From: Haliotis cracherodii
Lineage: Eukaryota
DNA length: 64,000 bases
Direction of reading: 5' to 3'
Assembly (NCBI RefSeq): GCF_022045235.1
Contig: NW_027266275.1
Span: forward strand, 72,850,001-72,914,000
Shown here: piece by piece, positions 2,683-40,906 of the stretch
Layout of the letters: each line of letters starts with the position of its first letter
Numbering within the stretch: the first letter of the stretch is position 1
Position numbers and translations under genes: made by a program
The notes under the pieces: model-generated
Databases searched by the model: none
Seen by the model: the letters and a program-made list of their open reading frames with translations, nothing else
What the model was told of the DNA's origin: nothing

Positions 2683-2793
2683 TCAGACCGAGGAGGTGGT
2701 GGACGGCGTGGCAACAGGGATGGCTTCAGGGAGGATGCCAGGGAGAAGGATCGGGATAGCCAGGTCATCCATGTTGGGCATAACAAACACACG
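2683..2793 (-). CDS. TEX2: TEX2 last coding exon
   Basis: tttcag|RVFVMPNMDDLAIPIL...TSSV-TGA. Confidence 0.9.
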   Translation of the reverse strand, partial: RVFVMPNMDDLAIPILLPGILPEAIPVATPSTTSSV

Positions 2794-40500: not shown

Positions 40501-40906
40501 ACAGGGCTTCTTGACCCATTTTATATTTTATCTGCCAACCCATATTCTCACCTTAATTTCAGCAATCGGTTGTGGCCTGGGTTAGAATTGATCAGGATGT
40601 CTACCTTCCTTCCAGAAACACCATTACCGAGAGCTGCCAGAGGATGTGAAGGCGTCGCTGGGCAGTGTGCCGGACCAGTTTGTGTACTACTTCACATCCC
40701 GCTTCCCCAAGCTCCTGCTCCATGCCTACAGTGCTGTAGAGTGCTGCCGGGATGAACGCATCTTCCACCAGTACTACGACACTGCTACACCATTTTATCT
40801 GTCAGATTCCTGCCATCCAGCAGACACACAGTCAGACAGACCCTCAGACACACGGACAGACAGCCCTGCAGACACACAGACTTCAGTAGCTTCCTTTCGG
40901 ACATAG
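19489..40906 (+). CDS. ERN1: IRE1 (serine/threonine kinase/endoribonuclease), 919 aa, 22 coding exons: 19489-19560, 23636-23744, 24586-24622, 24783-24925, 25169-25297, 28630-28672, 29724-29782, 30040-30099, 30508-30694, 32375-32456, 32961-33105, 34045-34286, 35104-35236, 36164-36254, 36572-36701, 36865-37018, 37707-37900, 38984-39125, 39254-39378, 39562-39685, 40171-40238, 40616-40906
   Basis: 2760 nt in frame, all GT-AG. Signal peptide; luminal motifs [28 protein letters not shown]; TM segment; kinase [42 protein letters not shown]; KEN RNase [25 protein letters not shown]. Confidence 0.96.
20120..21810 (-). mobile_element. Degenerate Mutator-like element with a FLYWCH zinc-finger remnant (21102-21360)
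   Basis: Y-NH...HWKR...CKGKVTT...EHNH pattern; inverted caaaacacctacagc/gctgtaggtgttttg ends. Confidence 0.55.
20510..21015. mobile_element. Non-autonomous TIR element (hAT-like CAG ends, 5-bp TSD) nested in the MULE remnant
   Basis: cagagctccagataagct ... agcttatctggagctctg; gttcc on both sides. Confidence 0.75.
23048..23557. mobile_element. MULE-type MITE copy 1 (about 90-bp TIR, 10-bp TSD aactgtatct)
   Basis: caatctcattaaaatc...gattttaatgagattg. Confidence 0.9.
23636..23744 (+). CDS. ERN1: IRE1 exon 2
   Basis: [27 protein letters not shown]. Confidence 0.9.
24400..24569 (+). mobile_element. SINE family A, full length, 14-bp TSD
   Basis: TSD tcttaatacatttc at 24386-24399 and 24570-24583. 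Confidence 0.92.
24586..24622 (+). CDS. ERN1: IRE1 exon 3
   Basis: [13 protein letters not shown]; phases 1/2. Confidence 0.85.
24783..24925 (+). CDS. ERN1: IRE1 exon 4
   Basis: [13 protein letters not shown]...[25 protein letters not shown]. Confidence 0.93.
25169..25297 (+). CDS. ERN1: IRE1 exon 5
   Basis: [14 protein letters not shown]...LLYIGRT. Confidence 0.92.
25676..25779 (-). mobile_element. 5'-truncated SINE family A nested in another repeat
   Basis: TSD tatcattataagga at 25662-25675 and 25780-25793; the host repeat also occurs uninterrupted (reverse) at about 5500-5625. Confidence 0.85.
26325..27720. repeat. 19-bp minisatellite, about 70 copies
   Basis: tcagggaaatatataccaa and tcagggaattatatactga variants. 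Confidence 0.93.
28630..28672 (+). CDS. ERN1: IRE1 exon 6
   Basis: [15 protein letters not shown]. Confidence 0.88.
28757..29530. repeat. 42-bp minisatellite, about 18 copies
   Basis: gccaagcaggtaaagccatcactaatcactggccatgggtta. Confidence 0.93.
29724..29782 (+). CDS. ERN1: IRE1 exon 7
   Basis: [19 protein letters not shown]. Confidence 0.88.
30040..30099 (+). CDS. ERN1: IRE1 exon 8
   Basis: [20 protein letters not shown]. Confidence 0.88.
30508..30694 (+). CDS. ERN1: IRE1 exon 9
   Basis: [16 protein letters not shown]...ETLDHL. Confidence 0.9.
30791..31365. mobile_element. MULE-type MITE copy 2
   Basis: Same TIRs; degenerate 9-bp TSD aatgcaaga/aatgccata. Confidence 0.88.
31651..32091. 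mobile_element. Non-autonomous element with about 65-bp TIRs
   Basis: taagtaatacgttaccactgttataccgaggctgttgtccccc ... gggggacaacagcctcggtataacagtggtaatgtattactta. Confidence 0.82.
32375..32456 (+). CDS. ERN1: IRE1 exon 10
   Basis: [20 protein letters not shown]. Confidence 0.9.
32961..33105 (+). CDS. ERN1: IRE1 exon 11
   Basis: [12 protein letters not shown]...GVLMLG. Confidence 0.88.
33135..33415. repeat. (TG)-rich compound microsatellite
   Basis: gtgtgtgtgctgtgcatgtt repeats. Confidence 0.9.
34045..34286 (+). CDS. ERN1: IRE1 exon 12 (transmembrane helix)
   Basis: GYHEVP...[21 protein letters not shown]. Confidence 0.9.
35104..35236 (+). CDS. ERN1: IRE1 exon 13 (Q-rich linker)
   Basis: [24 protein letters not shown]; phases fit both neighbours. 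Confidence 0.85.
35265..36020. repeat. 26-bp minisatellite, about 29 copies
   Basis: cagggtcgttccatcactgtatagat. Confidence 0.93.
36164..36254 (+). CDS. ERN1: IRE1 exon 14 (kinase G-loop)
   Basis: [23 protein letters not shown]. Confidence 0.93.
36572..36701 (+). CDS. ERN1: IRE1 exon 15
   Basis: [43 protein letters not shown]. Confidence 0.95.
36865..37018 (+). CDS. ERN1: IRE1 exon 16
   Basis: [18 protein letters not shown]...HLHSLDI. Confidence 0.95.
37707..37900 (+). CDS. ERN1: IRE1 exon 17
   Basis: [11 protein letters not shown]...[10 protein letters not shown]...[10 protein letters not shown]. Confidence 0.96.
38162..38513 (+). mobile_element. tRNA-derived SINE family C (central domain resembles Meta-SINEs, from memory); degraded copies about 37040-37280+ and 58705-58972-
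   Basis: A and B boxes (tggtctagtgg, ggttcgatccc); gtcataccaaaagacgttaaaagatggtac core; imperfect TSD cctct(t/a)agtttc. Confidence 0.75.
38630..38912 (+). mobile_element. tRNA(Leu-like)-derived SINE family D (copies about 62975-63244+, 16175-16400-, 47440-47570+)
   Basis: gtctaaggc head, long A-B box spacing, shared core ttgtcagcaccatacc...ccaaagtggtaa, (ACTC)n tail. Confidence 0.75.
38984..39125 (+). CDS. ERN1: IRE1 exon 18
   Basis: [35 protein letters not shown]. Confidence 0.95.
39254..39378 (+). CDS. ERN1: IRE1 exon 19
   Basis: [24 protein letters not shown]. Confidence 0.95.
39562..39685 (+). CDS. ERN1: IRE1 exon 20 (KEN domain)
   Basis: DVSDRIEKE...[12 protein letters not shown]. 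Confidence 0.95.
40171..40238 (+). CDS. ERN1: IRE1 exon 21 (KEN domain)
   Basis: [23 protein letters not shown]. Confidence 0.95.
40616..40906 (+). CDS. ERN1: IRE1 exon 22 (KEN end, stop)
   Basis: [36 protein letters not shown]...TAG. Confidence 0.95.

Follow-up and report, generated by a model that had tools for sequence, protein, structure and literature searches.

IRE1 and TEX2 are head-to-head neighbours in the black abalone Haliotis cracherodii, in a gene pairing that is probably of bilaterian age

IRE1 responds to lipid-bilayer stress besides unfolded proteins. The yeast TEX2 orthologue, Nvj2, is an ER-stress-induced tether that moves ER ceramide on to the Golgi, and Nvj2/TEX2 is active in ER stress and ceramide lipotoxicity (PMC5223604); the relocation of Nvj2p under ER stress is reported to be independent of Ire1p (Liu et al., PMC5223604). 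In mammals the same two orthologues, ERN1 and TEX2, are adjacent protein-coding genes, as in abalone (human 17q23.3, cattle chromosome 19). The cattle gene order is SCN4A, ERN1, SNORD104, SNORA50C, TEX2, PECAM1 (PMC7655849), so that two snoRNA genes intervene, unlike in abalone. Several hundred conserved ancestral microsyntenic pairs (CAMPs), such as HSPD1-HSPE1, are already known (Irimia et al. 2012, PMC3514665); here too, unrelated genes are immediate neighbours across distant phyla, and the conserved pairs are enriched in head-to-head arrangements with gaps of less than 1 kb (PMC3514665).

The abalone genes were analysed in a window of 64,000 nucleotides, the whole stretch of DNA under study. 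We take mammalian ERN1 and TEX2 to be in tandem with approximately 15-20 kb between them, hence with no common promoter, unlike in abalone, and the yeast IRE1 and NVJ2 genes to be unlinked. The orientation of HSPD1-HSPE1 is conserved, whereas that of IRE1-TEX2 presumably differs between abalone and mammals. Irimia et al. 2012 (PMC3514665) do not name IRE1-TEX2 in their main text, TEX2, ERN1 and IRE1 are not in the supplements of a 49-genome survey, and a literature search returned no publication on ERN1-TEX2 synteny or TEX2 microsynteny. IRE1-TEX2 is a new case of a conserved ancestral gene pair; both genes were already annotated, and no new gene or mechanism is involved.

Structure and identity of the two genes

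TEX2 lies on the minus strand, its coding sequence running from the ATG at 12621 to the stop codon at 2683-2685, with a non-coding exon 1 farther upstream, and IRE1 lies on the plus strand, from its exon 1 (ATG at 19489-19491) to the stop codon at 40904-40906. Exons were queried individually rather than as a joined spliced model, and full-length analyses were performed on the RefSeq proteins. The coding parts are as follows.

2683-2799, minus strand: last coding exon of TEX2 (isoform X1); P0512/P0511 residues 929-966, 100% identity, tblastn
4323-4442, minus strand: TEX2 coding exon 7, C-terminal part of the SMP domain; Lottia P0001 residues 489-528, 80%; limits are those of the alignment
5190-5423, minus strand: TEX2 coding exon 6, SMP domain; P0512 residues 813-890, 95% identity
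6214-6297, minus strand: TEX2 coding exon 5, an acidic stretch of Ser/Asp/Glu; P0512 residues 791-818, 100% identity
7143-7373, minus strand: TEX2 coding exon 4, part of the SMP domain; matched by both P0001 and P0512 in tblastn
9238-10152, minus strand: TEX2 coding exon 3, putative PH domain followed by a linker and the SMP start; P0512 residues 412-716, 99% identity
11380-12625, minus strand: TEX2 exon 2, with a 4-nt leader, the ATG (12621) and the N-terminal region that carries the membrane anchor; P0512 residues 1-414, 100%
19391-19560, plus strand: IRE1 exon 1, a leader that contains upstream ORFs, then the ATG (19489) and signal peptide; P0510 residues 1-24, 100% identity
23636-23743, plus strand: IRE1 exon 2, where the luminal domain starts; spliced joint and tblastn, residues 22-60
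24585-34301, plus strand: IRE1 exons 3-11, coding for the luminal beta-propeller-like domain and the transmembrane segment; tblastn with P0510/P0287; exons 3-7 at ~24585-24635, 24784-24927, 25165-25296, ~29690-29796 and 30039-30101, exons 8-11 at ~30507-30692, 32367-32456, 32961-33107 and 34032-34301
35104-39378, plus strand: IRE1 exons 12-18, coding for the linker and the protein kinase domain; tblastn; exons 12-15 at 35104-35238, 36163-36255, 36567-36701 and 36865-37017, exons 16-18 at 37706-37900, ~38990-39124 and 39253-39378
39547-39684, 40167-40238 and 40613-40906, plus strand: IRE1 exons 19-21, KEN/RNase domain; PF06479 matches

The Haliotis RefSeq IRE1 proteins P0510 and P0287 account for all 21 IRE1 coding exons (tblastn, ~100% identity). 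A GTGAGT donor directly follows the end of exon 1 at 19560, and the splice joint from 19560 to 23636 (GT..AG) is present in contigs from three of four RNA-like runs. The KEN/RNase (PF06479) and Pkinase domains were matched on P0510 with E=1.1e-43 and E=8.1e-41, respectively, PF06479 being matched by single exons as well, and residues 93-233 are covered by PQQ_2 and beta-propeller Pfam matches. Exon 1 codes for a hydrophobic leader, and a second hydrophobic stretch is encoded in exon 34032-34301; the kinase motifs VHRDIKPHN and SDFG are encoded in exon 37706-37900, and the RNase motif region LLRAMRNK/KHHYRELP spans the junction of exons 20 and 21. With a kinase joined to a KEN domain, a luminal sensor and the catalytic motifs, the protein belongs to the IRE1/ERN class, and its activity is predicted from sequence. 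A genome-wide PF06479 search found one KEN-domain locus in H. cracherodii, i.e. IRE1 is single copy. IRE1 orthologues were recovered across animals by protein search; one IRE1 exon was the query against the large representative set, where a word search from exon-sized queries misses full-length IRE1.

The Haliotis TEX2 protein P0512 matches seven TEX2 exons at 77-100% identity per alignment, the remaining exon (4323-4442) being matched via the Lottia orthologue P0001 (57% identical). P0512 carries an SMP domain (PF10296 MMM1, 25.8 bits vs a cut-off of 21.9), TEX2 orthologues bear PF10296 and PF26547, and a hydrophobic stretch closes exon 2, as expected of an N-terminal membrane anchor. PF23065 (PH_SMPa) matches exon 3 weakly (20.9 bits, under the cut-off of 27) and is among the precomputed matches of P0001. 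Exon 3 also matches Lottia, Capitella and bird TEX2, with bird and fish TEX2 34-36% identical across 90% of its length. A protein search with this exon indicated that TEX2 is single copy in the H. cracherodii genome; a PF23065 profile scan of the whole genome gave no match, the known TEX2 locus included, and is therefore uninformative on copy number. On the side away from IRE1, TEX2 adjoins TNRC6/GW182.

The interval between TEX2 and IRE1

Two further features lie between the coding regions.

19053-19187, minus strand: TEX2 exon 1, non-coding; observed to extend at least to 19187, and may reach ~19210
19188-19390, between the strands: common upstream region, at most 203 bp between observed transcript ends; TATAAA at 19277, CCAAT at 19341

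Contigs of 3156 nt (run X1), 3682 nt (run X5) and 98 nt (run X4) all terminate at 19052/19053, where the minus strand has the donor CTAG/GTAATT, and only transposon remnants lie between this exon and TEX2 exon 2. The acceptor of exon 2 (tttcag/GGAGATG, with an alternative possible acceptor at 12661) stands 4 nt before the ATG, so some upstream exon is required. Given how long the contigs are, on which strand the donor lies and that no other minus-strand gene intervenes, we infer that 19053-19187 is TEX2 exon 1 and is joined to exon 2. It is highly improbable that this exon is instead a promoter-upstream antisense RNA of IRE1, with TEX2 starting ~6.5 kb off and no common promoter, for although a splice junction from the 19053 exon to TEX2 exon 2 is not among the joints observed, the contigs of 3156 and 3682 nt have the size of a TEX2 mRNA whose coding region is 2.9 kb, and the good minus-strand donor, the run of nothing but transposon remnants and the demands of the exon 2 acceptor all argue against it.

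The observed 5' end of TEX2 and the IRE1 ATG are 302 bp apart (RNA contigs, three independent runs), and the furthest 5' contig points for IRE1 are 19391 (run X4) and 19413 (run X5); the gap figures are RNA contig ends, which cannot show true start sites or strand. Judged on these ends, the two genes are arranged 5' to 5' with a gap of less than 1 kb, the spacing of a bidirectional promoter, and this layout is the signature described for such promoters (PMC3514665). An earlier note on this DNA had read TEX2 (minus) and IRE1 (plus) as divergent, which the exon matches and RNA contigs bear out. The first exon that it proposed for TEX2 is real and non-coding and the gap is short, but the ~0.4 kb it gave to the IRE1 ATG is 302 bp; its IRE1 position of ~19380 is likewise not that of the ATG (19489), and ~19380-19391 corresponds to the furthest 5' RNA contig point.

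The promoter stretch occurs only once in the genome, which rules out a repeat. ERSE, ERSE-II and UPRE had no match in 18900-19700, and ERSE none in the whole window, by vertebrate/yeast motif definitions (CCAAT-N9-CCACG, ATTGG-N-CCACG, TGACGTG(G/A)); the lone CCAAT in the gap is about what is expected by chance. UPR target promoters (e.g. BiP/GRP78) are alike in serving ER-homeostasis genes and in having a CCAAT box, but they contain ERSE/UPRE elements, which the abalone gap lacks. Runs X1, X4 and X5 each yielded assembled transcripts of both IRE1 and TEX2, with similar word depth, and X3 yielded neither, which is no more than a hint of correlated expression; such depth cannot rank genes. These two ER-membrane housekeeping genes most probably owe similar constitutive expression to the abalone promoter.

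Distribution of the pair among animals

IRE1 and TEX2 are adjacent, by annotation order or common scaffold, in 11 mollusc species (H. cracherodii included), Lingula, Limulus and cattle; outside abalone this was read from annotation numbering and shared scaffolds rather than coordinates, and for cattle from a published gene list. Locus tags are consecutive in Patella, Nucella, Potamilus and Sinanodonta, and protein accessions in Lottia, H. cracherodii, Saccostrea echinata and Mactra, as well as in Lingula (721-kb scaffold) and Limulus (408-kb scaffold). Saccostrea cucullata has accessions that differ by two, on a 361-kb scaffold, and Mizuhopecten and Ylistrum each have both genes on one small scaffold. 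In Dreissena, IRE1 and TEX2 were apparently duplicated together.

IRE1 and TEX2 accessions are 573 apart in Owenia and 2267 apart in Pinctada, and in the crinoid Anneissia the genes are on separate scaffolds, which suggests that adjacency in these three is lost or unproven and that the pair is not universally kept. A large RefSeq accession distance was rejected as evidence against adjacency, as H. asinina accessions are 1431 apart and those of its congener H. cracherodii consecutive; by the same contrast, the far-apart accessions of Glandiceps, Antedon and Gigantopelta are uninformative. In human, TNRC6A is near ERN2, an IRE1 paralogue.

Explanations for the neighbour relation

The best overall explanation, to which we give a probability of roughly 0.7, is an old bilaterian neighbour pair with a bidirectional promoter in abalone and without a dedicated stress module. 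Abalone IRE1 and TEX2 would be single-copy neighbours transcribed apart from a common upstream region of ~0.2 kb, which would act as a bidirectional promoter in the ordinary sense. The neighbour relation would go back to the bilaterian ancestor and persist in mammals, a horseshoe crab, a brachiopod and, among molluscs, gastropods and bivalves; certain further lineages may have lost it, or leave it unproven. The ancestral age of the adjacency is itself deduced from this distribution. With the mammalian genes presumed to be in tandem, the ancient part would be the adjacency and not head-to-head promoter sharing.

The pair may be a chance survivor among thousands of ancestral pairs, with promoter sharing in abalone reflecting compact spacing only, and this reading falls just short of even odds. 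The pair was picked after the fact, and such conserved pairs are expected occasionally without selection. Molluscs, brachiopods, horseshoe crabs and vertebrates, which make up the retaining lineages, are known for conservative genomes; adjacency is apparently lost in some lineages, orientation varies if mammals are in tandem, and several hundred conserved pairs are on record (PMC3514665). However, a random pair seldom stays together, without an annotated gene in between, in four or more lineages that parted over 500 million years ago, and the third neighbour, TNRC6, is still linked to an IRE1 paralogue in human.

Rather doubtful is selected co-regulation, by which IRE1 and TEX2 would form an ER membrane-stress module that needs joint expression from an ancestral common bidirectional promoter. 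The very short abalone gap, the adjacency preserved in four distant groups, the apparent joint duplication in Dreissena, the role of Nvj2/TEX2 in ER stress and ceramide lipotoxicity (PMC5223604) and the enrichment of head-to-head pairs under 1 kb among conserved pairs (PMC3514665) are in its favour, but the gap is without ERSE, ERSE-II and UPRE, Nvj2p relocates without need for Ire1p (PMC5223604), and adjacency was probably lost in Owenia, Pinctada and Anneissia. The tandem mammalian order and the unlinked yeast genes also stand against it. The earlier note had proposed such an ancient co-regulated UPR/lipid-bilayer-stress module; the motif search, the Ire1p-independent relocation and the apparent absence of adjacency in those three genera weigh against that proposal, and a dedicated stress-inducible module is not supported, as nothing points to one. 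Its premises fared better: what it said of Nvj2 was correct (PMC5223604), the cattle list agrees with ERN1 and TEX2 as adjacent protein-coding genes in mammals (PMC7655849), and the linkage kept from mollusc to mammal extends, by annotation order and shared scaffolds, to other molluscs, Lingula and Limulus. Of the common promoter that it suggested, the very short shared upstream region holds for abalone, but head-to-head orientation is not a common feature if mammals are in tandem.

A wider version, which we consider distinctly unlikely, places a TNRC6(GW182)-TEX2-IRE1 block in the bilaterian ancestor. The TEX2-IRE1 link would have been selected for coordinated dosage of an ER/bilayer-stress sensor and a lipid-export tether, with the abalone promoter as the original arrangement, and vertebrate genome duplications would have split the block into ERN1-TEX2 on 17q and ERN2...TNRC6A on 16p. 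It is quite improbable that the genes are held together as a regulatory block, with enhancers of one gene within or beyond the other, so that breaks are harmful in any orientation. This bystander model has been described (PMC3514665), and adjacency that is kept although abalone and mammals differ in orientation fits a constraint independent of a common promoter, but blocks of this kind are usually found around developmental regulators rather than housekeeping ER genes.

A neighbour relation of more than 500 million years is a cheap, testable lead to joint dosing of IRE1 and TEX2. The pairing matters since TEX2/Nvj2 relieves ER ceramide overload in stress and IRE1 senses bilayer stress. If neither co-expression nor a common control element is found, the pair would be a further example of passive microsynteny; if either is found, the UPR would be tied to non-vesicular lipid export via genome architecture.

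Gene identities and structures

The window carries animal DNA, rich in repeats and with long introns. In protein-to-DNA comparison its exons were essentially 100% identical to the H. cracherodii RefSeq proteins P0510 (IRE1-like) and P0512 (testis-expressed protein 2-like), with 414/414 identities over residues 1-414 of P0512 (TEX2) and 96/97 between the last IRE1 exon and P0510; both genes are already annotated in black abalone RefSeq. RefSeq-matching exons, domains, and RNA contigs together confirm the divergent pair proposed in an earlier note, IRE1 (+) and TEX2 (-).

Features of the pair (window positions)
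12625-11380 (-): TEX2 exon 2, acceptor 4 bases before ATG
10152-9238 (-): TEX2 large PH/SMP exon, matches TEX2 orthologues
7373-7143, 6297-6214, 5423-5190, 4442-4323 (-): TEX2 coding exons, protein-to-DNA matches
2799-2683 (-): TEX2 last coding exon, protein-to-DNA matches, includes stop 2683-2685
19489-19560 (+): IRE1 exon 1, from ATG 19489 to the end before GTGAGT, encodes a typical signal peptide

TEX2 coding sequence starts at ATG 12621 and ends with the stop codon 2683-2685 (-). Its large PH/SMP exon matches TEX2 of Lottia (57% identity), Capitella, fish, and birds, and is single copy by protein search of the genome (1.18-Gb assembly, 80 contigs, scanned for copy number); the SMP/MMM1 domain scores above the Pfam cut-off and the PH_SMPa match is below its own. 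IRE1 comprises 21 coding exons in succession (stop 40904-40906, +) with a luminal beta-propeller-like domain, kinase (E=8.1e-41), and KEN/RNase (E=1.1e-43) in Pfam, and the HRD, DFG, and RNKKHHYRE motifs read from the sequence are all intact. A genome-wide profile search found no second KEN domain outside the IRE1 locus. Long coding-looking frames in IRE1 introns (26294-27729 and 28749-29545) were rejected as minisatellites (IYTDQGNIY... units and a second unit type), the source of spurious Pfam matches in the window.

Two stretches of IRE1 intron 1 (20400-21200 and 23000-23600) collect thousands of short contigs at word depth 10^4 in all four RNA-like runs and are interspersed elements, highly expressed or highly repeated; two TGACGTGA sites lie within them. 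Downstream of IRE1 are an ASB-like gene (56469-57572, -; a single unbroken reading frame of 368 aa that encodes ankyrin repeats and a SOCS box) and exons of a Ras-family small GTPase gene that runs past the window end (window 62564-62803, +; 732-1019, +, in L007).

The shared upstream region

The TEX2 exon 2 acceptor lies 4 bases before the ATG, so a non-coding exon is required upstream. Three contigs, one each from runs X1 (3156 nt), X5 (3682 nt), and X4 (98 nt), have an exon in common whose low end, 19052/19053, is a minus-strand donor (CTAG|GTAATT) and which extends to at least 19187. We infer that this is TEX2 exon 1, because the two longer contigs are compatible with a TEX2 mRNA (coding region 2.9 kb) and the interval between it and exon 2 holds a Tc1/mariner remnant and otherwise only non-genic sequence. 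The remnant, a transposase with several broken frames, occupies 14645-15294 (-) of TEX2 intron 1. On the other side, the IRE1 splice joint 19560->23636 (GT..AG) is present in contigs from three of the four runs, extending 5' to 19391 and 19413.

At most 203 bp thus separate the outermost transcribed positions observed on either side, 19187 and 19391, and 19187 lies 302 bp from the IRE1 ATG, close to the 0.4 kb first estimated. The gap is unique in the genome and AT-rich, with one TATAAA (19277) and one CCAAT (19341); it contains no CpG island, and a motif search of it found no ERSE, ERSE-II, or UPRE. IRE1 and putative TEX2 transcripts were assembled at similar word depths in X1, X4, and X5 and are both missing from X3, only a hint of co-expression.

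The IRE1 leader holds upstream ORFs at 19377-19415, 19402-19482, and 19456-19482 and an out-of-frame ATG at 19472 that overlaps the main ATG; its RNA-supported part contains the latter two ORFs and this ATG. IRE1 may be under translational control via these ORFs.

Adjacency in other species

One IRE1 exon was compared with protein representatives to obtain full-length IRE1, which was used with Lottia TEX2 in word searches for named orthologues. Accessions were taken from protein cluster look-ups, and adjacency was read from public annotation in three indirect ways, by locus tags, by protein accession numbers, and by matching the exact lengths of the contigs on which the proteins are encoded.

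TEX2 / IRE1 in public annotation
Patella caerulea: SNE40_018590 / 018589, consecutive locus tags
Nucella lapillus: ACOMHN_026755 / 026754, consecutive locus tags
Potamilus streckersoni: CHS0354_039172 / 039173, consecutive locus tags
Sinanodonta woodiana: ACJMK2_035554 / 035553, consecutive locus tags
Lottia gigantea: ESO84210 / ESO84211, consecutive accessions
H. cracherodii: XP_071106588-89 / 590, consecutive accessions
Saccostrea echinata: XP_061182082 / 083, consecutive accessions
Mactra antiquata: KAL4240932 / 931, consecutive accessions
Lingula anatina (brachiopod): XP_013384366 / 367-368, consecutive accessions, 721-kb scaffold
Limulus polyphemus (horseshoe crab): XP_022243413-14 / 411-12, consecutive accessions, 408-kb scaffold
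S. cucullata: accessions near but not consecutive (difference of 2), 361-kb scaffold
H. rufescens: accessions near but not consecutive (difference of 13)
Pecten maximus: accessions near but not consecutive (difference of 12)
Dreissena polymorpha: two copies of each within ~20 numbers
Mizuhopecten: same 756-kb scaffold
Ylistrum: same 1.3-Mb scaffold

The human 17q23.3 ERN1/TEX2 neighbourhood agrees with the order in cattle. On cattle chromosome 19 this order is SCN4A, ERN1, SNORD104, SNORA50C, TEX2, PECAM1 (PMC7655849). Counting against universal adjacency, TEX2 and IRE1 are 573 GenBank numbers apart in Owenia, 2267 apart in Pinctada, and on different scaffolds in Anneissia; in Glandiceps, Antedon, Gigantopelta, and H. 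asinina they share a chromosome, with nothing closer readable. RefSeq numbers cannot be relied on to disprove adjacency, since the genes are 1431 apart in H. asinina and consecutive in its congener H. cracherodii. The proposed mollusc-vertebrate linkage is supported by annotation order in molluscs, Lingula, and Limulus and by the cattle list, and its occurrence in lophotrochozoans, a chelicerate, and vertebrates would place the adjacency in the bilaterian ancestor. This evidence for an ancient linkage is indirect but consistent.

Near-identical Dreissena copies (TEX2 P0408/P0527, IRE1 P0289/P0528) lie on one chromosome in accession order IRE1, TEX2, TEX2, IRE1, an arrangement that suggests duplication of the whole pair with the order mirrored. 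TEX2 orthologues of Mactra antiquata (P0394) and Cichlidogyrus casuarinus (P0087) are labelled "Tabersonine 6(,7-epoxidase)" in GenBank, an annotation error that is apparently spreading.

A TNRC6/GW182 gene (GW repeats, M domain, TNRC6-PABC binding domain, RRM) lies in the flank 13-23 kb before the window start, convergent with TEX2 and ending ~15 kb from it.

TNRC6/GW182 (+)
72,826,992-72,837,020 of the contig carrying the window: gene
L010 6992-9268; L006 3641-5410, 6442-7020: loci of the gene

The human 16p12.1 list (PLK1, ERN2, CHP2, PRKCB, CACNG3, RBBP6, TNRC6A) has four genes between ERN2 and TNRC6A (PMC4433918); therefore the second human IRE1 gene is still near a TNRC6 gene. An older TNRC6-TEX2-IRE1 block, which fits this proximity, is possible, as a lead rather than a test.

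Standing of the pair

The head-to-head observation is confirmed. In mammals the pair is presumably in tandem, whereas in abalone it is head-to-head. A co-regulated UPR/lipid-stress module is still hypothetical, because the motif search found no stress element in the gap and the mammalian orientation differs. As the earlier note said, ER stress induces yeast Nvj2p, the TEX2 orthologue, to act in ceramide transfer: it relocates to contacts between ER and Golgi and promotes export of ceramide. Human TEX2 can partly replace it, and this relocation of Nvj2p is reported to be independent of Ire1p (Liu et al., 2017, PMC5223604). Neutral persistence of the adjacency, in genomes that rearrange slowly, competes seriously with such a module. 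A literature search found no paper noting the IRE1(ERN1)-TEX2 pair. Several hundred conserved pairs are attributed to two causes, shared promoters and regulatory blocks (Irimia et al., 2012, PMC3514665); IRE1-TEX2 fits this known class and adds another case to it.
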